This document shows positions 3,044 through 61,684 of a stretch of 64,000 nucleotides of DNA, in pieces. Made by a program: the position numbers and the translations under genes. The notes below the pieces were generated by a model. That model worked only from the letters and a program-made list of their open reading frames with translations. It made no database searches and was not told where the DNA came from. How positions within the stretch are numbered: the first letter of the stretch is position 1; each line of letters starts with the position of its first letter. The stretch lies in sequence record NC_055733.1. One strand, given 5' to 3'.

Positions 3044-4983
3044 ATGAGTATCAAAGAAATGTTAATGACCGAGCATCGCCCGTTCCATACACTTCTACAA
3101 AAACAAACAAAAACTCACTGTCCAACGATCTATGGACTTTCTCAGTTGGTCCCAAAACCCTAGGTGTGAAAGCAAATAGTATGCGAACAACCGGATTGGC
3201 TACCTACAAGAAGTCAGCTCTACCGTCAGTATTTCACATGTTCGAAATCGAGTCAAGTGGTAAAACAACAAGGAACATCAAATCTATTCCTAAGCCGCTT
3301 AACGCAATTGCTACCGTTGCTGAGATTATAGCAAACGAAACTCACGAAAACAAGCTTAATGATGTTGTTATTTTCCGTGTTCCGTCCAGCATGGGCAAAG
3401 CGGAAAGCGTTAGTGCTATCGTAACACGATATGTCAAAAAGAGTGGTGTTCCGTTTGAGCCGAAGGGAGTAATCAACGTAGGCGAAAAAGGTTTCAACTA
3501 CATTTTCATGACTCGCAAGGGCAAAAATCCAACAGTTGCTCAGGTGTTTGGCATCAAAGACGACGAGGTGATTACACTTGCCGACTTGTCTGCTAACGAA
3601 TCAACTATGGAAAAGATTGTAACTAAACTTGAGCCACAAATCAAGCGTCAAGTTCCTTCAATGATCAAAGTTTCTGAAATCGTTGGCGGTAGCGATGTTC
3701 CGGAAAACGCAGCCAAGTTTATCAAAGATAATCCACCTGTGTTGGGTAACGTGGATGTTAGCAAGAAACCAGAATTTAAAGTTGCGGACCTGTTTGCTAA
3801 GTATGAACTTGATTCAAGTAATGTGTTTATGTCATCAACTAACCCAACCGGTGATCGCCCAGCGAAAACAAGCAATATCGCGGGTATTATTTCCATGAAC
3901 TCTATGGCAGATAGCGTTGAAGCCAAACGGCTTGCAGCACAGATTGGTGAAATGAATATCACCATGAAAGACTTCTTGGAAAACAGCGATAAAATGACGA
4001 ATCTGAAAAAGTTCATCGAGGAAGAAATCACCGGTAATGCTACCGAGACTGAAAATATTGTACAGGCAGTATTTACTCACGGAATCGTTGAATCTATTTC
4101 GGATAAGATTACAGGGGCATACGCGAGCTTCCGTCCTACTTATATTGCAAAGGAAGATGTTGCTATTATTGAGCGTTATTGCGGCTCAGGATATTCTCAA
4201 ATTAATAACCAGCTCATTCACGGACTTGTTACTCCTGCTGCTACCGAGTGGATCAAGAAACTTGATGAAGCGTTTGAACGTTCTGGCGTTCGCGTGAATC
4301 CGGAGCTTACAGTCTATCGTGGTAGTAAGCTGCCTAGCTCGGAAGTCTTTGATATCACGGTTGGCAAGCTTTTCCACTTTAGAGCGTTTGTTAGTACGTC
4401 ATTGAACCCCAGAACTGGATTTAGTTTTGGTGGTAACGACAAACACGATATTGCCAGAGTATTGATTAGCACAAATCGAAGAGACAAGATCGATGATACC
4501 GAGCCTATGCAAGATCCAATGATTGCTGCATTTATGATCAGCGGACTCGATAAGATTCCTGTTATTATTCCAGGTGATTATAGTCCATATGAAAGAGAAT
4601 GTGAAGTTGTTTTGCCTCGTGGCACCACTATTCGAATCGAAGATATGGCAACAGCGAACTTTAATAAGTTCACAAAGACACTTACCAATATTCTTTTCGT
4701 TTGTAAGGGTGTCGCACCGTCAGAAGTAAGCATTAATGAAGTCGTTTATGACGGCGATGAATTCATGAATACCGGAAGACTGGTAGAATTCTCTCGATTC
4801 TCAGATCAGCAAAATGAATTGGTAGAAGCTAAGAAGAAAGCAGACAAAGCAGATAGCAAAGTAAAAGCCGCTATGTTGTTCACTGCCGCTGTTAACAGCG
4901 AGTCATTCACCAAGCAAATGAGCAAGAAAGAGAAAGATGAAATGAAACGAATCGCGGACAAATACTGCGGGTCTATTATGTGA
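3044..4983 (+). CDS. alt: Alt-like ADP-ribosyltransferase; apparent -1 frameshift near 3064
   Basis: YCGSGYSQIN, VYRG, FRAFVSTSL, ERECEVVLPRG (R-STS-ExE motifs) and VVYDGD tail; the strong AAGGAG SD plus ATG 3044 are out of frame with the 605-aa ORF at 3166. Confidence 0.9.
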
Positions 4984-5012
4984 AAAAGGGAGCCGATGGC
5001 TCCCTTTATTTT
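4984..5012. terminator. Bidirectional intrinsic terminator
   Basis: AAAA-GGGAGCC-GAT-GGCTCCC-TTTATTTT between convergent alt and 30. Confidence 0.9.
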
Positions 5013-6499
5013 TATCCGAAAAACTTCTTGATTGTCTTTTCATCGAATGCATGTTCGACGTTATTGGCTTCGTCTTTGTCGATGCGACGATGTTTGATAA
5101 TCGGCAGGAAGAAACTGACTTCCTTCTTGTTTTTCTTGTTGCGTGTCAAGCCGTTACACTCGATTTCCCAGATTGAGCCAATCAGTTCATCGGCAATACT
5201 CATGAGATATTCACGATCCAGATAGTCGCGCTCATGCAGAGGAATAGGAATCCACTGCTTGGTCTTCTTATCTTTGACTTGAGTTGTATCGGTAAAACCG
5301 GAGCCACAGTTACAGCGAACTTTACCGTCGGCAGTCTCGATTGTGAATCCGCCAACTTTGTTCGGATCTTTTTCGTGCGGATACAAAGCGACCACACGAA
5401 CGTCAACACGAATTTTTTCTTTGAACTTAACCTGATCTTTGCTACGAGTATTCTTCCACATGTTCAGTCCACATTTCAGAATGATACCTTCGTAACCAAG
5501 TTCACGATAACGCTGGTATACTGCTTTGGCGTCGGCCAGAGTGCTTACCTTAGTCTGCTCGATGATCTCCACACGGAAGCTATCACAACGCGATACAAAC
5601 GCTTCCAGCATTTCCCTACGCTTCTCAAAGTAGAAGTCTTTAGGACAATCACGCTGACCGTAATAAACATCACGCGGGATAATGTCCCATACTTGATATA
5701 CAATACAATCGGCTTCGTCAACCGTGATTGAGTTTTTCAGGCTCTTGTTTACGATGCCGTTACCCTCTTCACGGTCCGATACATCTTCGGATTTGTCAAA
5801 ATCGTCGGAATCGTCTTCCATGAGTGCGCTAAGACCAGTCGAGACTGATTTTTGTTTTCGATACACCAACTCGCCGTCGATTACCCAGTTTTGCATACCG
5901 GATTTCTTGATTGCTTCTTTCAGCTTATCCAGACCCATGTATTCGTTGCCAGCACGGGAATACATAGTGATAGAGTCGGTATCGGCGTCGATATCGGTAA
6001 AGCAACGAGCACCATCTGCTTTCAATTCTGCAATAGCGTGGCCGCGATTGATAATAGCCATAGAAAGCTTATCATCTTCTGGTTGTGCAAGCATTTGCGG
6101 CTGTTTTGGACACAGATCTGCCCATACTTTATTCGCGATTGTTGCACCGATGCCGATTTCGAGATCGCGAAACATAACGCGACGAATAACCTCATAATCA
6201 TGAGCATTACCCATGGACAACGCTTTCGCTAGTTCAGCAACAGCGGTACCGCCAGTGAGTGCGCGAGTTACCAGATAGGTTTCCATGAATGTCAGAGTTG
6301 CGATGATATCAGTCTTGTTATGAAAATCAACAACAACTGGAAAAGTCTTCTTGTTTATGCCAAAGTTAATTTGCTTGTTGTAAGCGAACTTAAAACAAGT
6401 GCTCAAACCTGGAACATTTTTGTGATACTCCACGATTTGTTGCTTTTTGTTGGTTGAATCTTCGGCAGCAATCACTTTCAAAATGTCTAATACGAACAT
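5012..6499 (-). CDS. 30: ATP-dependent DNA ligase gp30
   Basis: ELKADGAR motif I, IDGEL, EGIILK, VKFK, CGSGF; start reset to MFVLDIL at 6499. Confidence 0.96.
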   Translation of the reverse strand: MFVLDILKVIAAEDSTNKKQQIVEYHKNVPGLSTCFKFAYNKQINFGINKKTFPVVVDFHNKTDIIATLTFMETYLVTRALTGGTAVAELAKALSMGNAHDYEVIRRVMFRDLEIGIGATIANKVWADLCPKQPQMLAQPEDDKLSMAIINRGHAIAELKADGARCFTDIDADTDSITMYSRAGNEYMGLDKLKEAIKKSGMQNWVIDGELVYRKQKSVSTGLSALMEDDSDDFDKSEDVSDREEGNGIVNKSLKNSITVDEADCIVYQVWDIIPRDVYYGQRDCPKDFYFEKRREMLEAFVSRCDSFRVEIIEQTKVSTLADAKAVYQRYRELGYEGIILKCGLNMWKNTRSKDQVKFKEKIRVDVRVVALYPHEKDPNKVGGFTIETADGKVRCNCGSGFTDTTQVKDKKTKQWIPIPLHERDYLDREYLMSIADELIGSIWEIECNGLTRNKKNKKEVSFFLPIIKHRRIDKDEANNVEHAFDEKTIKKFFG

Positions 6500-15595: not shown

Positions 15596-15676
15596 TCTAC
15601 AGTCTCCTTTTGACTTTTCAAGACAACTCGAAAATTGTCTTGAAAAGTCGGGCAGTTTCCTCTGCCCACACTTATA

Positions 15677-16201: not shown

Positions 16202-16283
16202 TTTCTTCCTCTATTTGTTTGGAATAGAAAGATACCTTTTTCTATGCACTTCCTTTGTTGTGGTTGTTGATGATTGCCTAGTG

Positions 16284-16311
16284 ATTATACACGACGAAAT
16301 AGCTATGTCAA
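16284..16311 (-). promoter_or_regulatory. Sigma70-type promoter upstream of vs.1
   Basis: TTGACA-16-TATAAT with TG extension. Confidence 0.7.
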
Positions 16312-16354
16312 ACGGTATAATCGATTTTATCTCATTTGATTATTAAATAATCTA

Positions 16355-16530
16355 CTCCAGAAATCAGATATCGTAAGATTGCGAGCATAGCGAGCTAACT
16401 TATTGATTTCATTGAAGAAGACAAAATAGATTCTCATTAAAGTATTATAAGAGATTTTATTTTGTCTTTTTAGATCATTTAATTAACACTTATAACAAGG
16501 TTTTAACAAACTAGCGGCTACGCCGCAGTC
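16355..16530. repeat. Dispersed structured intergenic element, copy 1
   Basis: Near-identical to 61445..61595; 53-bp identical core at 16417..16469; several hairpins. Confidence 0.9.
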
Positions 16531-16820
16531 TATCGACACTCTTCTTCCTTGAGATCTTTTCGATAATGACAAATGATCTCGTTTTGCTTCTGAACATAGT
16601 TGAACACTTTTTCAAGCCAGATCCGATATCTTACCGAATCATCATAGCTCATTGCTACATAAGGCTTACCGTCGTCAAGAATTACTCTCCACTCCGGTCG
16701 ATAAGTCTCTACTACTTCCGGTCTCGGTGGGTGATAGACAACTGGCTTGATTTCTTGTTGGTGTTTCGCACACCCACCCAACATCAGAGTTAGTCCAATC
16801 AATGCATGTTTCATTTGCAT
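16530..16820 (-). CDS. o-spanin (Rz1-like lipoprotein, PseT.2-like)
   Basis: LMLGGC lipobox, HPPRP, YVAMSY, WL...YV; overlaps i-spanin. Confidence 0.85.
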   Translation of the reverse strand: MQMKHALIGLTLMLGGCAKHQQEIKPVVYHPPRPEVVETYRPEWRVILDDGKPYVAMSYDDSVRYRIWLEKVFNYVQKQNEIICHYRKDLKEEECR

Positions 16821-24806: not shown

Positions 24807-24827
24807 GATAACTTCCTCAGATTGTGT

Positions 24828-24872
24828 GTTTCGATTTGGCTATAATAACAGGACTAGATTTTGATGCAAGCA
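24828..24872 (-). promoter_or_regulatory. Repeated early-type promoter module, copy A
   Basis: GTGCTTGCATC..ATCTAGTCCTG-TTATTAT...ATCGAAAC shared with 29015 and 29726. Confidence 0.8.
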
Positions 24873-24885
24873 CTTTCTGAAAAAT

Positions 24886-24908
24886 AAAAATCCCGCCGAA
24901 GCGGGATT
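24886..24908 (-). terminator. Intrinsic terminator
   Basis: Same stem-loop as 21641. Confidence 0.9.
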
Positions 24909-28975: not shown

Positions 28976-29014
28976 GATGTATTCCTCAGAGTTTGTTTGT
29001 GAATCGCGTCTCGC

Positions 29015-29062
29015 GTTTCGATGTGGACATAATAACAGAACTGGATTACCGTGCAAGCACTT
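29015..29062 (-). promoter_or_regulatory. Repeated early-type promoter module, copy B
   Basis: GTGCTTGCAC..AATCCAGTTCTG-TTATTAT-GTCCACATCGAAAC. Confidence 0.8.
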
Positions 29063-29071
29063 TTTAAACTT

Positions 29072-29705: not shown

Positions 29706-29725
29706 TTCCTCAGTTGGTGTATCTC

Positions 29726-29775
29726 GTTTCGATGTGGTCATAATAACAGGACTGGATTTCGATGCAAGCTTTTTC
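29726..29775 (-). promoter_or_regulatory. Repeated early-type promoter module, copy C
   Basis: GCTTGCATCGAAATCCAGTCCTG-TTATTAT-GACCACATCGAAAC. Confidence 0.8.
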
Positions 29776-29779
29776 CAAA

Positions 29780-29803
29780 AAAAATCCACCCGAAGGTGGA
29801 TTT
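29780..29803 (-). terminator. Intrinsic terminator
   Basis: AAATCCACC-TTCG-GGTGGATTT-TTTT. Confidence 0.9.
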
Positions 29804-47583: not shown

Positions 47584-47608
47584 AATGAAAATAACATGAG
47601 GATTAGAA

Positions 47609-50600
47609 ATGGCAGATCTTAAATTAGGGTCTCAGATTGGTGGAAATCTAATCTGGCACCAAGGAATCCTGGAATTAAATCCCGTTGACGATAAACTATT
47701 TTATCGTGATCAGGAAATAATGACTACAAAAGGGTACCAAACAATGCTTGGCTCAATCAAGTTTGGTACACCGAATAACGCTTATGATATCGAGAGTCTT
47801 GGCACAGAAGCAGGTGCGGGAACAAAGCGTTATTTGCGTAAAATGAAATCGGGCGCAAGTGCTACTATTTGGCATGAAACTATTCTGGATAACGTATACA
47901 CGATTTCGACTGGTATAACTGATGCGGCTCCGCAGTTTACGATCACTAATGGAAATAGCGCGACATTTCAGTTCCCTGTATTAACTAACAGTCCACAATC
48001 TGGCGCAGCAAATAGTTTCGCTAGAAAAGACTACGTGGACGCTGTTGATGCTAGAAACGTTGCTAAAGCGGGCGATACAATGACCGGTACTCTTACTGTG
48101 CCAAAAATTGTTGATAACAACACAAATATTGGTAAGGATATTCTTACTTATATTAAACTGAGTAATGTAAATCAGTGGGCTGGTCCCGTTGGACAATCTC
48201 GATTTGTTACGCCAGATTCTGTTGGTAGTCCAGCTGGTAATAAGGGCGGATATTGGAACGTATTATCTCGCCGCGATTCTGCTGGAGGGTATGCCGGTAT
48301 CTTTATTCCGTATGGCAACAGTGAAAACAAAAACTATATCGGCACACAAGAACTTGGAACTAATGCTCCAATTTGGGCAGAGATCTATACCAATCTGAAT
48401 AAACCAACACCGGGCGATCTGAATGCTTACACCAAATCGGAAGTTGATGAAAAGAGTTGGATCAGAGTTAGAGATGAAAGAGAGGCAATGATTCAGCCAA
48501 GTGCGCTGGATGCTCGCACAATTTCGGCTTATTTCACAAACAAGAGCGACGTTTCAACAAACTGGGTTTCTGGTTTCACTGTTAAAGGCTGGGATACAAC
48601 TTACGCATCTTGGTCTATTTTTTCTAGTTCAAGATCTGACACCGATGATAAACGTCTTTGGTTTAAGCATGGTAGAACCGATTGGGCTCCTAGTTCAAGA
48701 ATTTATCATGAGAATGATAAGCCAACAAACGTTGAGTTGAATCTGGTATCACGCGACGGCGATGAAATGACCGGTCTATTGAATATGAAAGTTCCGGATT
48801 CAATGGGTTACGGAAAATACAGCATTCAATTGAATAACGGGTCTATCGGCGGAATCAATCAGTTAGTATTCAACGATCCGTCTGATGCAACTAGCGAAGG
48901 TATTGCTTGGCCAAAAACCGGTAAGAATTCATCATCCGAAACACAAGCAGATTATGATATGTTATGGGCTTTTGACGGTAAGCTTCTATTCAATAACAAA
49001 GAAACTTACGGAGAATGGAATAAGCCAACAAATAACGATTTAAATCTGGTATCTCGTGCTGGTGATATTATCAAAGGCGAACTTGAGATTCAGAATGCAC
49101 CGCTTACATTGACTAACGGTATGATGTACGTTAATAACGGCAACACAAAAAGAGTTATTAAACGTCTAGGTGTGCAAAATGACGCAAAAGCAATGCTGAT
49201 TCTAATTGCACCAAAATACGTTGGCAAAGCATTACCAAAACGCGGATTTGTTGGTCGAGTTACATTTGAGCGTGGTTCAACAGGTTCAACCCTACAAGCT
49301 AACTACGTTGATATTTCTGCCGTAACTGCATACACAGAAACAGATGCTCAGATTCATTATGAGTCAGGTGGAACTCCTGTAAAACTCGTTTATCATACGC
49401 ATACCGATGGCATAGAATATCTTGCACTGTATCGCGGAGTAGTTAGTGCGGCTACAATTTACATCGATGGATATGTTTATGGAGAAGAGCCAGTTGTTAT
49501 TTCTGACGCTACTGGATTGACATTCACCGATCTGAAAACAAGAGCTAGAATTTACAGCTCAGATAATAAGCCAACTAATGTTGATTTAAATCTGGTATCA
49601 CGCGCTGGTGATACAATTACCGGTGATTTGATTGCAACTAACATTTATTCGTCTGTTACTCAAAGCACACGTGGCGATTCTTTTGCTCGTAAAGACTACG
49701 TTGATACCAAGGTAGGCACAGCGGTACAGAGCGTTACCGCTACTGGAGCAGTTAAGAGCACAGGTGGTATTAACCCAGTTATCAGTTTGATTAACGCAAC
49801 AAACTCTGCCGACGGTGCAATGTCTGCTGCCGATAAAGCCAAACTAGACGGTTTGCCTTCCGCCGCGGTTAATAAGACTGGCGACACTATGACTGGCAAC
49901 TTGACATTCACTAATAATAGTGAATTGGTGTGGAGTCGAAATACAGACTGGGCAAAGATTGGATTCAAGAACGACTCGGACGCAGATACCGATAGCTATA
50001 TGTGGTTTGAGACTGGTGATAATAAGAACGAGTATTTTAAGTTTAGGATGCACAACACAACTGGACCAAAACACGAAGTTCTGGATATCAAACTGGAAGG
50101 ATCAACATTCGCACACGATGTTATTCTAAAGGCGAGAGAATCTAACGCTGTCAAGTTGACTAACGCGCAAACAGAATATACAGGCAATACCGGCGTTGAG
50201 CGTATTATTGGTGGAATCACTTCGCAGTGGTACGAAGACAATCTAGTATTTGGACACGTTCGTTCTCCAGGTCAGCCGTCTGCTGGGTTTGGTGTTAGAT
50301 TGAATGACGCTTATTTGATGCGAGTCACACCGGACAGAAGACTTGCAACTGGTGCTCTTGTTGGTGATAGTTATGTCGCAGTTGCTAAAAATGATCGCAT
50401 TTTGGCAATGGAAGTTGATACAACAACTAAAGTTCCTTACATTTCAGTAGATGTGAAATATCAAGCAATTAGATTTGAAAACGATAGAGCAATCACTATG
50501 CCAGCCGGCGCTCTTAACGTGGCGAGTAATGTTTCTTCTGGCGGAGATGTATTTGCAAAATCAAACGTGAATGTAACTGGACAATATATTCAGTTCAACG

Positions 50601-51766
50601 ACAAAGCGGCGGGTAAGACCGCTGGTGAAACTGGCATTACAACAGCAAGATTTGTTGAAATGTTAACAGCACTCGGTGCATTCAAGACTGTTTATTGGTG
50701 TGGTAAAGTTTCGTGGGATTATGCTGGTAATAACGTATTGACCGATACGGGATATGGTAATATTCATTTGGCTGGATGCGTTGTTGAAGTTATTGGTACG
50801 GCTCAATATATGATCCGTATTACTACTCCGACAATAACAGGAACTTCTCTGACAGGAGCACAGAATAACGCTAGTAAAGAGTTCATCTATGTTAATCACG
50901 GTTCTACATATGCGCCTGGTTGGAGACGCGGTATTAATAGCCTAGACGTTAGAGATTTGAATTCAGCTACGTCTGTTGGAGATCCACGCAATACTATTCC
51001 TTATATCAAGGGTGATGGTGTTATGGAAATCTCTACCTTCATTGATATGCATCGTAAAGATTCAACTGCTGATTTTGATACTAGATTAGAATGTGGTAGC
51101 GCAAAACAACTATTGGTGACGAACTCAAATGGAACACTAGAGTTGGGAGCACAGAATGCTAGTTATGCTCACATTTATACAGATCGTCCTGTATTCTACA
51201 TGAACAAAGAATTGCAGATTAATGGCGCTCGCGTAATGTATGAGGGTTCCACTCACGGAACATTAACTCTAAGTAACTGGATTAGAACAACAGGTAATAC
51301 CGGCTGGTTTAACGCAACGTACGGTGGTGGAATCCACATGGAAGACGCAACTTGGTTACGCGCATATAACGGTAAAAAGTTTTATGTTGCGAATACAGAT
51401 GGCGACGCATTGAATACATCCGGTGGTGTTTATGCTGCTGGTAATGGTAATTTCAACGACGTTCAAGTTCGTTCGGATGAAAGATTGAAATCTAATTTCG
51501 AGCCAATTTTGAATGCTTTGGACAAAGTTGATTCTCTTTCTGGTTGGATATATGACAAAGTTGGCAAAACAACTCGCGAAGCGGGTATTATCGCACAACG
51601 TTTGAAAGCAGTATTGCCAGAAGCTACTGGAATAGCGAAAGATTCTATGAATCCAAATGCAATCGAGTATCTGACTGTTTCTAACTCTGGCGTTAACGCG
51701 CTGTTGGTAGAAGCAATCAAAGAACTTAGAGCCGAGTTGAACGAACTTAAATCAAAACTTAACTAA
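47609..51766 (+). CDS. 37: Distal long tail fibre 1: gp36-like N-terminus fused to gp37-like shaft, with C-terminal S74-type intramolecular chaperone
   Basis: MADLK.GS..GG..IWHQG (gp36), RKDYVD and GDTMTG repeats, SDERLK...GIIAQ...LPEA...LLVEAIKEL. Confidence 0.88.
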   Translation: MADLKLGSQIGGNLIWHQGILELNPVDDKLFYRDQEIMTTKGYQTMLGSIKFGTPNNAYDIESLGTEAGAGTKRYLRKMKSGASATIWHETILDNVYTISTGITDAAPQFTITNGNSATFQFPVLTNSPQSGAANSFARKDYVDAVDARNVAKAGDTMTGTLTVPKIVDNNTNIGKDILTYIKLSNVNQWAGPVGQSRFVTPDSVGSPAGNKGGYWNVLSRRDSAGGYAGIFIPYGNSENKNYIGTQELGTNAPIWAEIYTNLNKPTPGDLNAYTKSEVDEKSWIRVRDEREAMIQPSALDARTISAYFTNKSDVSTNWVSGFTVKGWDTTYASWSIFSSSRSDTDDKRLWFKHGRTDWAPSSRIYHENDKPTNVELNLVSRDGDEMTGLLNMKVPDSMGYGKYSIQLNNGSIGGINQLVFNDPSDATSEGIAWPKTGKNSSSETQADYDMLWAFDGKLLFNNKETYGEWNKPTNNDLNLVSRAGDIIKGELEIQNAPLTLTNGMMYVNNGNTKRVIKRLGVQNDAKAMLILIAPKYVGKALPKRGFVGRVTFERGSTGSTLQANYVDISAVTAYTETDAQIHYESGGTPVKLVYHTHTDGIEYLALYRGVVSAATIYIDGYVYGEEPVVISDATGLTFTDLKTRARIYSSDNKPTNVDLNLVSRAGDTITGDLIATNIYSSVTQSTRGDSFARKDYVDTKVGTAVQSVTATGAVKSTGGINPVISLINATNSADGAMSAADKAKLDGLPSAAVNKTGDTMTGNLTFTNNSELVWSRNTDWAKIGFKNDSDADTDSYMWFETGDNKNEYFKFRMHNTTGPKHEVLDIKLEGSTFAHDVILKARESNAVKLTNAQTEYTGNTGVERIIGGITSQWYEDNLVFGHVRSPGQPSAGFGVRLNDAYLMRVTPDRRLATGALVGDSYVAVAKNDRILAMEVDTTTKVPYISVDVKYQAIRFENDRAITMPAGALNVASNVSSGGDVFAKSNVNVTGQYIQFNDKAAGKTAGETGITTARFVEMLTALGAFKTVYWCGKVSWDYAGNNVLTDTGYGNIHLAGCVVEVIGTAQYMIRITTPTITGTSLTGAQNNASKEFIYVNHGSTYAPGWRRGINSLDVRDLNSATSVGDPRNTIPYIKGDGVMEISTFIDMHRKDSTADFDTRLECGSAKQLLVTNSNGTLELGAQNASYAHIYTDRPVFYMNKELQINGARVMYEGSTHGTLTLSNWIRTTGNTGWFNATYGGGIHMEDATWLRAYNGKKFYVANTDGDALNTSGGVYAAGNGNFNDVQVRSDERLKSNFEPILNALDKVDSLSGWIYDKVGKTTREAGIIAQRLKAVLPEATGIAKDSMNPNAIEYLTVSNSGVNALLVEAIKELRAELNELKSKLN

Positions 51767-51799
51767 GGAGGACGGGGAGAAATCCCCGTTATTATTATG
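51765..51799 (+). promoter_or_regulatory. Split translation start: SD, GAAA hairpin, ATG
   Basis: AAGGAGG + ACGGGGA-GAAA-TCCCCGT + 7 nt + ATG. Confidence 0.8.
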
Positions 51800-52249
51800 G
51801 TAGCATTACCGTTTTTTATGAGCACAGCTAACTCGGAATTTCGAGCAAACGGCTGGGGATCTAATATGAGAACACAAGCTGGATTACCAGCCGCTGGTAT
51901 GATAAGTGAACTCGTTGAAAAAGCATTCTTGAACTTAATTGAGGCGCCGAGATACACTCACTTTGTTCCGGTTGATTTCTGGTTTGATGGCACCAACACT
52001 ATAATCAAACATGGTGGACCATATGGCTCTACAGCTCAATATGCTGTTATTGCTGGCAACCCATGGATCTATATTAGATTTGAAGGTGCGATGATAGCTG
52101 ATGGCATTGCCGCTAATACGTGGCAAAGAATGAGCACGGCCGCAGTTAAGATTAGAAGAGTGTGGAGCACTGGCGGAAAAGCGTTTGTTACTTTTGGCAA
52201 CGCGCCATTTTCACCACAGAAACGATATGATTGGACTTTCACTGGATAA
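51797..52249 (+). CDS. 38: gp38-like fibre-tip adhesin
   Basis: Follows a fibre with cleavable chaperone; N-terminus loosely like T2-type gp38 attachment helices; gene-38-type hairpin start site. Confidence 0.6.
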   Translation: MVALPFFMSTANSEFRANGWGSNMRTQAGLPAAGMISELVEKAFLNLIEAPRYTHFVPVDFWFDGTNTIIKHGGPYGSTAQYAVIAGNPWIYIRFEGAMIADGIAANTWQRMSTAAVKIRRVWSTGGKAFVTFGNAPFSPQKRYDWTFTG

Positions 52250-52250
52250 T

Positions 52251-52275
52251 AAGGAGCTTCGGCTCCTTTTATTTT
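52251..52275 (+). terminator. Intrinsic terminator
   Basis: GGAGC-TTCG-GCTCC-TTTTATTTT. Confidence 0.9.
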
Positions 52276-52277
52276 AT

Positions 52278-52284
52278 CTAAATA
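52278..52284 (+). promoter_or_regulatory. Late promoter CTAAATA for distal fibre 2
   Basis: Same layout as fibre 1. Confidence 0.65.
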
Positions 52285-52308
52285 TGACTATAAACGAGAG
52301 GAGTCACA

Positions 52309-55300
52309 ATGGCAGATCTTAAATTAGGGTCGCAGATTGGCGGAAATCTAATCTGGCACCAAGGCATTCTAGAATTAAATCCTCTGGACGATAGCCTATT
52401 TTACAAAGAATTCGACATGATCACTTCTAAGGGTGGTCAGACAATTAATGGTACACTGTCACTAGCTGGTGATGTTGATACAAAAGGAAGATTTACCGCA
52501 GTTGGTAATGATACTTCTTGGGGTTCGGTCGCTCAACCAGCATTTGGAATGGACAAAGATAATACCGCTGGTGCTCATTGGCTGCTTGCCAGTCGCAAAC
52601 GTGACGGAAGTCAACGTGCTGGTATTCAAGTTCTTACAAATGATTCTGGTGAAATGCGTATCTACACAAACAAACATGCTAATTACACTTCATTTAAAGA
52701 CGGCCAAATCTATATTCAAGCTACCACTCCGTCTGCTGATGCAAATGCAACTAGAAAAGATTATGTGGATCGAGAAGTTGATAAAGCGATGCAATTTGCG
52801 GAAACAACAACTGATAAACTTACTGCCGATTTAGCTACTGCTAATACCAGAATTAATACTCTTGACGCGCAAAACGTGAAGATTACTGGCAATCAGAATA
52901 TCGCTGGCACTAAGACTTTCACCGACTTGCCTGTTATTCAAGATCAGCCAACTGCTGATACACACGCGACAAACAAGAAATATGTTGATACCAAAGTTGG
53001 TACCGCTGTCCAAAGCATTGTTACAACTGCCCCACTGACTACTACTGGTGGTGTTAACCCAACGCTGGCCATCAATCCTGCGACTCGTACCGCTGCTGGG
53101 TCTATGAGCGCACAAGACAAAGTTAAACTTGATGATTTGCCTGCCGATGCATTGAGTCGTTCTGGTGGTAACATGAAGAATGGTGGATATATCAAGCTTG
53201 AAGGACTTGGTGGATTGCAATCACTGTATAACGGTAAAAATTATTCTATTCTGAGAGATCATAATAACGGTAACGTTACTCTTGGTGCAGCCGCTGGTGA
53301 TTTGTATGTTGGTTATAACACAACATCAGAAGAGTTTACGACTAAAAACGTATTGCTTTATGCGCCTATGAAATGGACTAATACAAACCGTGTTCTAGTT
53401 GATACTGACGGCTTTATTCCGTGGGCTAGTATTAAAGATCGCATTGGTCTTGAAGGCAAGTCTAAAATGTTGAGAGGACCAATCAACTTTGACGAACTGG
53501 AAAGCACAGGCGATTATAACTTGTATCTTGCTAAAGCAACTGGATCTAAAAACCCGCCGCCATTTGATTATGGTACTATGAGTGTTATTGGTGCTGATAA
53601 AGATGGAAATACTTTTGTTACTCAATTAGCAACAGATCAAAGAACTGGGATTAGTTATACCAGAACACGTAATGATGGTGCTATGGCATGGACTGGCTGG
53701 ATTGAGAATGCCAACGAGTTTACTGATTTTGGATATCAATATAAAACCCGAATCGAAGTTGGTGGTGACGCAGACAAGTTTTATCCAGTGGCAATAGAAA
53801 ATGATAGATTTCGCACATACAACACAAAACGATATTGTATATCCCGCGCATACAACGCAAAGGCACCTGATACTTGGAACAACACAACACACAAAGGTGG
53901 TTTAACTCTTTCTTTTGAATGGAGTGGTGATGGTGATTGGGGTGGAAACTCTAAAAACATTGTTGTGACTGATTTTAGTTCGTCTTATACAACTGTTTGT
54001 GGTGGTATGCAATTATCAGCGGGTGATATGGTTGTTTGGTTAAGAGGCGGTGGTGCGGAATACTGGTTCTATAGTGACAATGGTATTAAATCAAGAATAT
54101 CCGTTAACTTAAAAAAGTTTATTGCACCAGATAAGAAAGAGTATTTGCCCAGAACTAAAGCGGAAGCAGATCAAGCAGTTATTGATGAAATCATGCCTAA
54201 ATTCGCAATTCGCAATGGCGGCGAACTATATGATCGCAATCGTAGAGTTCTAGTTGCCGATGGTTCTACCTCAATGATTGGCGATCTCAAAATTGAGAAA
54301 GAACAAGCCGCATTGATTCTGAAAAACGCTGCTGGTAACGTGGCGGATAAACCAGAAAACTATGGTCGTATTAGATTCGAACATGCAACTGGGGATCAAC
54401 ACGTTGAGTTGTGGCATTCAGTACATGACGATTACAGACCCGGATATGGATTAAGAGTTCTTAAACCGGCTGATAATAAAGGTACAAGTAATGCTTGGCT
54501 TGATGTTCAAGGTGATGTATTTGGACAAAACTTTATTCAAACTACAGCACAATCCACAAATGCGGCATCTAGCACACGGAAAGATTATGTTGACGCATTA
54601 ATTGCAACTAAAGTGAATAAATCTGATGTTGCTGCTAGTTCTGATTACGCTGGACTATTGGGTAAGATTCCAAGATGGTGTATTTGAAATTGCTCGTTAT
54701 ATCGATTTTCATACAGTTGGAAGCACAAGAGATTTCGATGTTAGACTGGATTGCTATGAAACTGGAAAGCTTAATGTTGTTGGTGGGGTTTTGCAAGTTG
54801 GCGGTGGCGATGTGTATCACAGCAAAAACAAACCAACTAATACGGATTTGAACCTAGTTAGTCGTGCTGGCGATACAATGACTGGCGCGTTGACACTGCC
54901 GAAGATCAAGGGTGCTATTAACTTGATGGACAAAGCAAGTGTTAAATTTGTTGATGGTGCGAATACTTGGTTCCATTTGTTTTCCGAAGGTAATCTATTC
55001 AAGATAAGTCAAGGAACAACTGGTCAGAATAATGTTCTGAGTATCGGAAGTGATGGTGCCGTTAATATGATTGGTAACTTGACTAACACCAAAATGATAA
55101 CATCAAACACCGCTATCGGAGTTGACGCTAATACTAGAAAGATTGCGTTTGAAGTTGGTGATGATAAAACTCCTTATATCAGTGTTGATTATGCATATAG
55201 AGCATTACAGTTTAACGAAAATAAAACTGTTACCGCGACTCATGGATTTGAGATTAATGGCAAAAACGGAAACGGTGATTACTTCGTTAATCACACTGGA

Positions 55301-57446: not shown

Positions 57447-57754
57447 ATGATTACTTCCAAGTTAAGCCTAAGCGATTGGATCGCGATATGCACCGTAGTT
57501 GGTGGAGTCTTCATTGGTGGATATCGTATTGGCTCGGCAGAAGAAGCGGTAAACAAAGTTATTGATAGAATGGACAGAGTGGAACAAAGGGTTAGTCAAA
57601 GCGATAGCATTAACGTAACTCAAGACACCAAACTGGAATATCTACAAAAGCAACAAGAAAAGACTACCGAAGTAATGGAGAAGATGAACGAGGCACTTAA
57701 TAATTTAAATGGTCGATCAATAAATTGCAGGCTGTTATTGAAAGTCAGAAATAA
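57447..57754 (+). CDS. Single-TM coiled-coil protein, holin candidate (apparent 1-nt deletion at about 57712)
   Basis: One TM then coiled coil, directly after lysozyme; the corrected frame ends INKLQAVIESQK* just before the terminator. Confidence 0.55.
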
Positions 57755-57755
57755 G

Positions 57756-57785
57756 AAAAGGGAGCCGTTGGCTCCCTTTATTTTT
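57756..57785. terminator. Bidirectional intrinsic terminator
   Basis: AAAA-GGGAGCC-GTT-GGCTCCC-TTTATTTTT between convergent genes. Confidence 0.9.
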
Positions 57786-58077
57786 ATGCGTAGTCTACGT
57801 CACTGCGAGGACCCAGCATCGCGTTCAGCATTTCATAATGCTCCTGTGCCGAGAACTCAGAAAGAACTTCCATACGTTCTTCCGGTGTGAGTCTACCTAT
57901 CATTTGTCTGAAACTCATTTTGGTGAATTCTAGTCCTCGAACAGTGCGGAACCCAGCTTCATTCAAAAAGTCGATCAGATTTTGTTGTGTGTCAAGGATT
58001 TCACCGTCTACCTCAAGTTTGATAATAAGAGAAACGGTAGCAACGATATCCTTAATTAGTTCTAATTTGGCATTCAT
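57784..58077 (-). CDS. asiA: Anti-sigma70 factor AsiA
   Basis: IVATVSLIIK, FLNEAG, SFRQM..RLT.EER match T4 AsiA; syntenic. Confidence 0.88.
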   Translation of the reverse strand: MNAKLELIKDIVATVSLIIKLEVDGEILDTQQNLIDFLNEAGFRTVRGLEFTKMSFRQMIGRLTPEERMEVLSEFSAQEHYEMLNAMLGPRSDVDYA

Positions 58078-61384: not shown

Positions 61385-61413
61385 AGTATTGCATAGTTGG
61401 ATGATAGTGTCAA
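61385..61413 (-). promoter_or_regulatory. Sigma70-type promoter upstream of ndd
   Basis: TTGACA-17-AATACT with TG extension. Confidence 0.65.
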
Positions 61414-61444
61414 TAGATAATCAAATCGACTATTAACTAATCGG

Positions 61445-61595
61445 CTCCAGAAATCGATGATCGCAAGATTGCGAACGTAGTGAGCTAACTCATTGATTAC
61501 CTTAAGGAAGACAAAATAGATTCTCATTAAAGTATTATAAGAGATTTTATTTTGTCTTTCTCAATTAACTAGCGGCTATGCCGCAGTCTTCGACA
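61445..61595. repeat. Dispersed structured intergenic element, copy 2
   Basis: Homologous to 16355..16530; identical core 61507..61559. Confidence 0.9.
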
Positions 61596-61612
61596 ATCTA
61601 CTTGGAAACGAT

Positions 61613-61674
61613 TTGGAGCGATCCCATATGATAGCTATAACATCGTATTGCTATATCATACAGAATCGCTCCAA
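61613..61674. other. Long imperfect hairpin next to repeat copy 2
   Basis: TTGGAGCGAT/ATCGCTCCAA outer stem with inner TATGATAGC/GCTATATCATA pairing. Confidence 0.6.
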
Positions 61675-61684
61675 CGATTTCCTA

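Follow-up and report, generated by a model that had tools for sequence, protein, structure and literature searches.

PeSL cassettes (promoter-early stem-loops) of RB49/phi1-type and other T4-like phages are repeated intergenic hairpin cassettes that lie beside promoters, between transcription units, and whose copies can recombine (PMC2839356, PMC4122927). The element described here resembles them in these respects. It is a structured intergenic repeat of Aeromonas phage Ah1 (MG250483 / NC_055733, 221,116 bp), a T4-like phage (Straboviridae, Cinqassovirus), and was analyzed starting from two copies in a stretch of 64,000 nucleotides (nt). This stretch, hereafter the window, corresponds to record positions 157,117-221,116 and is thus the last 64 kb of the Ah1 genome (100% identity). 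However, PeSLs carry a strong sigma-70 promoter inside the repeat together with a short G/C stem-loop terminator, while the well-formed promoters beside the Ah1 repeat lie outside it, only a -10-like hexamer is found within, and the core hairpin is long and A+T-rich. PeSLs are also numerous, clustered in hyperplastic regions and co-oriented, whereas the Ah1 repeat occupies seven evenly spaced loci with eight copies in all, and occurs in both orientations.

The replication origins of T4 are the other system to compare with. T4 has at least five origins around its 169-kb genome, which share no motif and of which only two are mechanistically understood; at oriF (uvsY) and oriG (gene 34), a promoter is followed by a DNA-unwinding element and activity depends on MotA promoters (PMC3016281). 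The Ah1 repeat is similar to oriF and oriG in that several sites are spaced at tens of kb, in that an A+T-rich segment of ~50 bp lies by a promoter-like element, and in its link to late-gene regions. Judged by composition, the 53-bp core of the repeat (~21% G+C) would be suitable as a T4-type unwinding element. On the other hand, T4 origins are not palindromic and have no sequence in common, whereas one hairpin sequence family is found here, and the Ah1 relative Aeh1 lacks MotA as well as T4-type middle promoters (PMC1524935). Collectively, our results show that the window copies are members of a family of structured intergenic repeats that is specific to one clade and apparently undescribed. 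We tentatively read the element as a cis-acting DNA signal that acts at the scale of the whole genome, namely a replication-initiation module, and give this reading a probability of roughly 35%.

Within the window, a 132-nt direct repeat with 87% identity is found at 16338-16469 and 61428-61559; it includes an identical core of 53 nt (16417-16469 and 61507-61559). The units as a whole extend over 16343-16537 (copy 1) and 61433-61594 (copy 2). Copy 1 lies in the gap that separates vs.1 (gp229) from pseT.2 (gp228), an Rz-like spanin gene, and its right end overlaps the pseT.2 stop codon at 16530-16532. Copy 2 is located between an ndd-like gene (gp166) and gp165, and the flanking genes of both copies are on the minus strand. 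An earlier note on this DNA had reported leftward TTGACA promoters next to both copies and no ORF (open reading frame) inside them, and both statements hold. The promoters are of sigma-70 type and match the consensus at 12/12 (16311->16284) and 10/12 positions (61413->61385); their sequences differ, and they are not part of the shared repeat. Copy 1 contains no ORF of 40 amino acids or more, and no gene is annotated in the copy 2 interval of the Ah1 record. The features of the two units, in window coordinates, are as follows.

16284-16311, minus strand: leftward promoter of vs.1, TTGACA-16-TATAAT, outside the repeat and adjoining copy 1.
16343-16363, plus strand: 5' flank motif of copy 1, the -10-like TAATCT followed by ACTCCAGAAA; the motif is found upstream of most copies in four phages.
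16371-16384, plus strand: 5' G+C hairpin of copy 1, TCGTA-AGAT-TGCGA (the 'variant I' module runs on to 16393).
16394-16471, plus strand: rigid 78-nt block of copy 1, made up of GCTAAC, a 17-nt spacer and the core hairpin; indel-free in 26 copies.
16396-16408, minus strand: match in copy 1 to the consensus of integration host factor (IHF), WATCAANNNNTTR (AATCAATAAGTTA), a candidate lead.
16417-16469, plus strand: core hairpin of copy 1 (5' arm 16417-16435, loop 16436-16450, 3' arm 16451-16469), from its fold and stem covariation.
16470-16513, plus strand: variable 3' spacer of copy 1 (0 to ~45 nt in other copies).
16514-16537, plus strand: 3' G+C hairpins of copy 1, GCGGC-TAC-GCCGC (16514-16526) and GTC-TATC-GAC (16528-16537), the second overlapping the pseT.2 stop codon.
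61385-61413, minus strand: leftward promoter of the ndd-like gene, TTGACA-17-AATACT, outside the repeat and adjoining copy 2.
61433-61453, plus strand: 5' flank motif of copy 2, TAACTAATCGGCTCCAGAAA.
61461-61474, plus strand: 5' G+C hairpin of copy 2, TCGCA-AGAT-TGCGA.
61484-61561, plus strand: rigid 78-nt block of copy 2 with the core hairpin.
61507-61559, plus strand: core hairpin of copy 2 (5' arm 61507-61525, loop 61526-61540, 3' arm 61541-61559).
61572-61594, plus strand: 3' G+C hairpins of copy 2, GCGGC-TAT-GCCGC (61572-61584) and GTC-TTC-GAC (61586-61594).

Both copies are real, but the element is not a two-copy duplication, as it had first appeared. BLAST and profile hidden Markov model (HMM) searches find exactly eight copies at seven loci in Ah1 (E-values 1e-36 to 1e-46), and it is well supported that the window copies are two of these eight copies of a composite intergenic repeat. 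The copies A to H lie at 23.8, 39.9, 78.2, 107.9, 108.1, 136.7, 173.5 and 218.6 kb of the record, D and E forming a tandem pair and the last two falling in the window. As the forward HMM scores (122-155) are far above the reverse scores (19-36), each copy is clearly oriented. With respect to the neighbouring genes, five copies are sense (A, C, D, E and F) and three are antisense (B, G and H).

The repeat family is present in 13 records from three genera, and its restriction to one clade of T4-like Aeromonas phages is well supported. The carriers include Ah1, Aeh1 and avDM12-TAAL in Cinqassovirus, phiAS5 and phiWae14 in Chrysonvirus, and PX29, AsFcp_1, AsFcp_2 and AsFcp_4 in Angelvirus. Aeh1 has eight copies at the same eight sites as Ah1, while PX29 shares at least A, B, C, D, F, G and H with Ah1, and phiAS5 at least C, F, G and H. 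By BLAST, 8-9 places per genome are found in Cinqassovirus and Chrysonvirus, and the same number in PX29-type genomes with PX29's own copy as the query. The number of places is equal among Ah1, Aeh1 and avDM12-TAAL, and likewise between phiAS5 and phiWae14. Copy number is ~7-8 throughout the clade, including the diverged Ahp1_CNU-2021 discussed below. Searches of IMG/VR, JGI metagenomes and GTDB genomes with the exact core-loop pattern returned only known Aeromonas phages and chance pattern matches, and BLAST matches to Staphylococcus phage were rejected as chance A+T-rich similarity. The whole window has no match in Rfam 15 at the gathering score; in E-value mode, only chance generic hairpins such as microRNA precursors and snoRNAs were returned, at 10-27 bits compared to thresholds of 48-120. 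The repeat is not mentioned in the literature searched on the Aeh1 genome, five T4-like genomes, T4-related genomes and PeSLs.

Each unit consists of a flank motif, one or two small G+C hairpins, an unpaired GCTAAC..TTGA stretch, an A+T-rich hairpin, a variable spacer and further G+C hairpins, in this order. The 78-nt block (GCTAAC, 17 nt, and a hairpin of 19 stem positions with a 15-nt loop) is free of indels across 26 copies from four phages. Its core is a 19-bp A+T-rich hairpin with the loop motif TTAAAG-N2-3-TATAAG, and in the 26 copies CATTAAAG and TATAAG are kept, with the middle three bases alone varying. The 5' hairpins vary among copies within one genome (TCGCA/TGCGA, GTCGC/GCGAC, GTGGC/GCCAC, GCGGC/GCCGC and GCGCC/GGCGC), and with their loops some of them read GTCGC-GCCA-GCGAC, GTGGC-AA-GCCAC and GCGGC-GTA-GCCGC. 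Downstream of the core, a spacer of 0 to ~45 nt is followed by hairpins of the same types. Hairpins in which the pairing is kept while the sequence changes point to folding of a single strand, either as RNA or as unwound DNA, and not to protein sites on duplex DNA. A resemblance of GTCGC-GCCA-GCGAC to a CRISPR repeat was considered and rejected, as Rfam gives no match to a CRISPR family and the hairpins of other copies are unrelated.

The hairpins TCG(T/C)A-AGAT-TGCGA and GCGGC-TA(C/T)-GCCGC of the earlier note are found in both window copies, and the imperfect stem it had drawn in the 53-nt core is confirmed as a stem of 19 positions with a 15-nt loop. The outer stem it proposed, GAAATCA(G)ATA/TATTGATTTC in copy 1 and AATCGATGA/TCATTGATT in copy 2, can be drawn in both, but it requires the 'variant I' 5' module, is absent from copies that lack this module, and plays no part in the minimum-free-energy folds. 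There, the 5' and 3' modules pair with each other, so that each window copy forms a single long imperfect hairpin, with energies of -50.8 and -51.4 kcal/mol for copies 1 and 2 (z = -5.3 and -5.45 compared to shuffled sequence). We rejected the idea that the whole unit is maintained as a long palindrome. The 5' and 3' arms of the same copy have a mean complementarity score of 15.9 in Ah1, and arms from different copies 15.1; as a copy's own arms match no better than those of other copies, firm support is limited to the core and the local hairpins.

The earlier note had proposed conservation and covariation in relatives as a check, and both were found. With Ahp1_CNU-2021 included, 90% of the cells of the core stem are paired, compared to 37-64% in slid controls, and 7 of the 19 stem pairs have compensatory changes on both sides, a number that 3/500 shuffles reach. 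Within the stem, position 15 is left open in almost every copy, and G.U is the usual state of pair 13. The argument that wobble pairs reveal which strand folds is weak but not empty. On the strand reading TTAAAG...TATAAG (canonical strand), the core stem has G.U-type positions over A.C-type positions by 8 to 1, and core folds with DNA parameters slightly favour this strand (-9.6 vs -8.8 kcal/mol in Ah1, -10.0 vs -8.0 kcal/mol in Ahp1_CNU-2021). However, folding of the whole element is better on the canonical strand in 16/26 copies, i.e., there is no consistent strand preference. The TATAAT noted earlier on the minus strand of the loop is present in 2/8 Ah1 copies, and the others read TATAGA, TATATA or TATAAA.

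The flank motif consists of TA..CT followed by CT(C/T)CCAGAAA, with 5-7 nt between TA..CT and CCAGAAA in most copies. It precedes most copies and is found nowhere else in Ah1; it is absent at site A and degenerate at C and E. In most Ah1-type copies, the -10-like TA..CT lies ~60 nt upstream of the core and points toward it, with neither a -35 nor an extended -10. As the motif occurs only beside the elements, it was rejected as a general promoter class, e.g., the middle promoters of MotA-less phages. An upstream (T/C)AAATA was also rejected as a late promoter, as it fits poorly to CTAAATA or TATAAATA, the late promoter of Ah1.

Such a motif raises the possibility of a family of small non-coding RNA genes, in which the flank motif would provide a -10-type promoter and be followed by the 5' hairpin, a 'seed' GCUAACUCAUUGAU, and the core with a U run as terminator. 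This would agree with a TA..CT that travels with the unit and, in most copies, stands 5-7 nt ahead of CCAGAAA, with the conserved unpaired stretch GCUAAC..UUGA, and with the T run found after the core hairpin in most copies (3-5 U as RNA in most Ah1-type copies). The 8:1 ratio of G.U-type to A.C-type positions is on the strand that would be transcribed, and the layout is like that of bacterial small RNAs. Nevertheless, we find such genes distinctly unlikely. Apart from the missing -35 and extended -10 and from the copies where the motif is missing or degenerate, the Ahp1_CNU-2021 copies have neither the motif nor the GCTAAC spacing. A terminator would not need a conserved loop sequence, and the conserved 3' hairpins would fall outside the RNA. 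A search of the phage genome for targets of the unpaired stretch, with up to 3 mismatches, returned only the element copies and chance-level matches. There is no Rfam match, the orientation relative to neighbouring genes flips between lineages, and the even spacing is unexplained. The non-coding RNA suggested by the earlier note therefore has little specific support.

The GCTAAC..TTGAT stretch is also of interest as a lead on the other strand, where it is a candidate IHF match. The consensus WATCAANNNNTTR is loose, with 12 matches in 64 kb compared to 6.1 expected, one of them at the same position in each window copy. The CAA..TTAGC part of the match is kept in 26/26 copies, and several PX29 copies depart from WATCAA. 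In the BIME-1 / RIB-RIP elements of E. coli, inverted G+C palindromes likewise flank an A+T-rich part with an IHF consensus, after gene ends. However, BIME-1 elements are bacterial, occur in ~100 copies and have no long central hairpin, and the IHF site here is a candidate, a match to the consensus.

A search with the vs.1 protein led to Ahp1_CNU-2021 (MT161459, 218,317 bp), which has a long gap at the pseT.2 / vs.1 site. The gap holds a recognisable but strongly diverged unit, which has seven copies in this genome and is found in no other record. The core, GGGGGACTTATAGAGTCTC-TTTAAAGGGTATAAG-GAGATTCTATTTCTCCCCC, still has the upper stem as well as the TTAAAG-N2-3-TATAAG motif in its loop, while the lower stem is replaced by a G+C clamp and an internal loop, and both the flank motif and the GCTAAC spacing are lacking. 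Sites B, C, D, F and G are common to Ahp1_CNU-2021 and Ah1, and A (gp47) and H (ndd) are absent. One new site lies beside the primase gene, the Ah1 counterpart of which is between H and A on the circular map, and a second new site lies between tail-fibre genes, inside the stretch that corresponds to the largest gap of Ah1. An extra G+C hairpin has the loop TTCG on the gene-sense strand in 6/7 copies; TTCG loops are typical of RNA hairpins. In addition, two mutually exclusive hairpins are possible in 6/7 copies, since the C run at the foot of the core's 3' arm has two potential partners, namely the G run in the 5' arm and the GGGG that comes next (CCCC-TTCG-GGGG).

The copies are evenly spaced in both lineages. 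The spacing was tested against seven random points on a circular map, with D and E counted as one locus. In Ah1, neighbouring loci are separated by 16.1-45.1 kb, and the standard deviation (sd) of these gaps is 8.7 kb; P for an sd this low or lower is 0.002, and a largest gap so small occurs in 0.5% of the random cases. Because the Ah1 test was made after the positions had been seen, Ahp1_CNU-2021 was used as a check. Here, the distances between the seven loci are 25.1-38.6 kb (sd 4.6 kb, P = 3.5e-5). The set of sites has changed between the lineages while the even spacing was kept or improved, and the differences go toward evenness.

The placement of the copies relative to transcription units is also regular. 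All copies are intergenic, after the end or terminator of one gene and before the promoter of the next. At Ah1 site A, an ordinary terminator stands before the unit and a sigma-70-type promoter after it. In Ahp1_CNU-2021, at least three copies lie 3' of an ordinary terminator of the upstream gene, and 7/7 are directly followed by the downstream promoter, which 4/7 touch as a late promoter. As ordinary terminators precede several copies, the element is dispensable for ending the upstream transcript, and it sits where little read-through is to be expected. The last hairpin runs straight into the late promoter at C (gp126) and F (gp15) in Ah1, Aeh1, PX29 and phiAS5, while no late promoter adjoins the copies at Ah1 sites A, B, G and H.

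The units can lie either way round relative to the neighbouring genes. Between Ah1/Aeh1 and phiAS5/PX29, the H unit is inverted as a whole, flank motif included, and a vestige of the motif is found on the old side. The direction of the loop indicates that B and G, too, have opposite orientations in the Ah1 type and in Ahp1_CNU-2021. Such free orientation fits a DNA site better than an oriented RNA.

Two annotations overlap the element. In Aeh1, the ORF Aeh1p059 (49489-49671, minus strand, 60 amino acids) extends across copy B and is probably a spurious call. In the Ah1 record (136560-136643), the annotated start of gp286 lies inside the flank motif of copy F (GTTCAT, which is ATGAAC on the other strand). 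This start is probably called too far upstream, because a minus-strand sigma-70-type promoter lies inside the annotated ORF.

A location that is always between a stop codon and the next promoter might also indicate transcript punctuation. Here, the unit would fold within an operon RNA and end or attenuate the transcript, or be cut out, e.g., by RNase III, with the G+C hairpins protecting the new 3' and 5' ends; it would work either way round, like PeSLs, T7 RNase III sites and REP/ERIC. The T7 sites R0.3-R18.5 are similar in being about ten intergenic hairpins of about two helical turns with a conserved internal irregularity, in a virulent phage. They contain internal loops comparable to what is found here, a hairpin of 19 bp + 3 bp that nearly always has the pair-15 mismatch and, two pairs off, a conserved G.U. 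The T run after the core and the gene-sense TTCG loops of Ahp1_CNU-2021 suit the same role, as do predicted terminators on the other strand. One of these is formed by the Aeh1 5' hairpin with TTTCTGG, which is the 'terminator' called by TransTerm at Aeh1 49530-49543, and another by the 3' hairpin of copy 1 with TAGTTTGTT. A second, unrelated long hairpin also adjoins copy 2.

We regard transcript punctuation as possible but doubtful. It does not explain the even spacing, several copies are already preceded by ordinary terminators, and in the listed part of the Aeh1 TransTerm table no core hairpin is among the terminators listed. Regardless of gene direction, it is always the same strand that carries the conserved loop, the G.U bias and the block with its rigid, asymmetric build. 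An apparent folding advantage of the transcribed, gene-sense strand (21/27 copies) was rejected as a signal, since random genome windows give a background of 73%. T7 sites, moreover, are all in the transcribed orientation and their cleavage has been shown, whereas the orientation of the repeat varies, several copies follow terminators, and cleavage would be a prediction.

The copies of a genome resemble each other more than they resemble their counterparts elsewhere. Same-genome copies are alike at 0.90 (block) and 0.95 (core), while same-site copies across genera are alike at 0.77 and different-site copies across genera at 0.76. As likeness within a genome (0.90) exceeds likeness at the same site across genera (0.77), the copies evolve in concert. 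The core stays conserved from genus to genus, even though the non-coding DNA next to it is scrambled.

Concerted evolution might simply reflect a selfish or neutral palindromic repeat, MITE-like (miniature inverted-repeat transposable element) or a recombination linker, which is kept uniform by gene conversion and has no function for the phage. The inversion of the whole unit at H, the turnover of sites between lineages, the D/E tandem and the arms that are mutually inverted repeats in some copies are all in line with this. A functionless repeat is nevertheless highly improbable. There is no transposase, and no target-site duplication was seen at the junctions inspected, which do not amount to a systematic test. 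Copy number is fixed at ~7-8 per genome, most sites are conserved across three genera, and neither a core conserved across genera amid scrambled non-coding DNA nor even spacing would be expected. Copy-specific terminal inverted repeats, as in a MITE, are not found (15.9 vs 15.1, see above), nor is presence/absence polymorphism between close relatives; differences in sites are seen only against the distant Ahp1_CNU-2021. The ERIC and Correia (NEMIS) elements are similar as imperfect intergenic palindromes of 100-190 bp that are often transcribed and lie in either orientation, and Correia elements have an IHF site, RNase III cutting in the RNA, and target duplications of their own. However, ERIC and Correia elements are high-copy bacterial repeats with terminal inverted repeats, whereas 7-8 copies at fixed positions are found here.

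Taken together, the free orientation, the position after terminators and the even spacing speak against both a local regulator and an oriented signal in operon RNA. The best fit is a DNA role at the genome-wide scale, and among such roles replication initiation has, in T4, the closest precedent. Early T4 synthesis begins in late-gene regions, and oriC may need a late promoter (PMC3016281). The units might be sequence-defined replication origins, or programmed hairpin sites at which replication starts, every ~31 kb, which we hold as a tentative proposal. The earlier note had named a replication origin or a primase-helicase loading signal as its other option; this gains support from the seven evenly spaced loci and the terminator-to-promoter gaps, and neither this nor the non-coding RNA is proven.

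As a replication start, the duplex would open at the A+T-rich core, and the canonical strand, which tolerates G.T pairs, would fold into the core hairpin once unpaired. The G+C hairpins could bound or stabilise the opened region, and the resulting branched structure might be of the kind preferred by the T4-type helicase loader gp59. A priming transcript could come from the -10-like motif of the element or from the abutting promoter, as at T4 oriF and oriG. Seven such sites ~31 kb apart would divide the 220-kb genome into similar replicons. In this scheme, the unwinding, the strand folding, the priming and the helicase loading are inferred, whereas anatomy, copy number, conservation, covariation, placement and spacing were established by the analysis.

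Several points weigh against replication initiation. The Ah1 spacing test is post hoc, and the two spacing tests are not independent, because 5/7 Ahp1_CNU-2021 sites are shared by descent. A sequence-identical set of origins would be unlike T4, whose origins share no sequence motif (PMC3016281). No initiator protein is pointed to, and neither replication data for these phages nor transcripts were found in the literature searched. The element's own promoter-like part is limited to a -10-like hexamer, and the well-formed neighbouring promoters point away from the core. The T run after the core and the TransTerm call on the Aeh1 flank hairpin suit a role at the RNA level, as does the gene-sense TTCG loop in 6/7 Ahp1_CNU-2021 copies. 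A positional match to T4 oriA (near soc), oriC (near rI.-1) and oriE (near repEA) was considered and rejected, as these do not correspond to the element sites (PMC3016281).

Even spacing would also fit other genome-wide roles, and two can be named. The element might be an entry site for loading of the gp45 clamp by late promoters, or a recombination hotspot whose hairpin is cut (gp46/47, endonuclease VII) to start recombination-dependent replication. T4 late transcription needs DNA-loaded clamps, and SbcCD-type enzymes cut hairpins. These phages encode gp46/47, endonuclease VII, gp45 and gp44/62, and a late promoter is abutted at 2/8 Ah1 and 4/7 Ahp1_CNU-2021 sites. However, Ah1 sites A, B, G and H are not beside a late promoter, the 15-nt loop and the mismatches disfavour cruciform extrusion, and the conserved loop sequence is not required by either role. 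We therefore consider both unlikely.

Other repeats and structured regions are found in the window. At 61603-61684, a second, unrelated palindrome with a stem of at least ~30 bp (GGAGCGATCC...GAATCGCTCC) lies immediately behind the stop codon of gp165 and directly adjoins copy 2. Both phiAS5 and PX29 have conserved this palindrome, and compensatory changes are seen in it (GGAGCGATTC vs GGTGCGATTTC). At 16202-16260, beside copy 1, the ~59-nt 5' leader of vs.1 (minus strand) is near-invariant in Ah1, phiAS5 and PX29, while the promoter region next to it is scrambled. The leader holds an ATAGAAA...TTTCTAT hairpin and could be a translational operator. Between gp230 and vs.1, a perfect 15-bp inverted repeat with an 8-nt loop, GACTTTTCAAGACAA / TTGTCTTGAAAAGTC, is located at 15612-15649.

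A 61-nt intergenic repeat (..GTTTCGATGTGG.CATAATAACAGGACTGGATTT..GCAAGC..; families D4 and D5) has three copies, at 24821-24908, 29008-29068 and 29719-29802. Two of the three directly precede a terminator hairpin of the AAAATCCCGCCGAAGCGGGATT family, and the repeat may be a promoter-terminator cassette of the PeSL kind. The terminator-like hairpin AAAAAGGGAGCC(N4)GGCTCCCTTT (D6) is found at 183-220, 4981-5018 and 57753-57790, on both strands, and these copies look bidirectional. Diverged direct repeats of 41-153 nt with 62-80% identity (D1, D2 and D7) are present at 47593-55000 in tail-fibre genes and look like fibre coding modules.

The observation that started this analysis is real and beyond chance, and the earlier note had seen part of it; an origin-like role is our best-supported guess, offered with clear reserve. 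How T4-type phages choose where replication starts is partly understood, and seven loci that can be predicted from sequence would make the question directly testable. If the units are origins, they would be the first origin set in the T4 group with a recognisable common motif, and the first case known to us in which spacing has been kept while individual sites were exchanged in evolution. If they serve punctuation or late transcription instead, they would be a new class of regulatory repeat in large virulent phages, and why they are evenly spaced would have to be explained separately. In practical terms, these phages are candidates against Aeromonas in aquaculture, and the intergenic regions marked by the family should not be treated as spare during their annotation or engineering.

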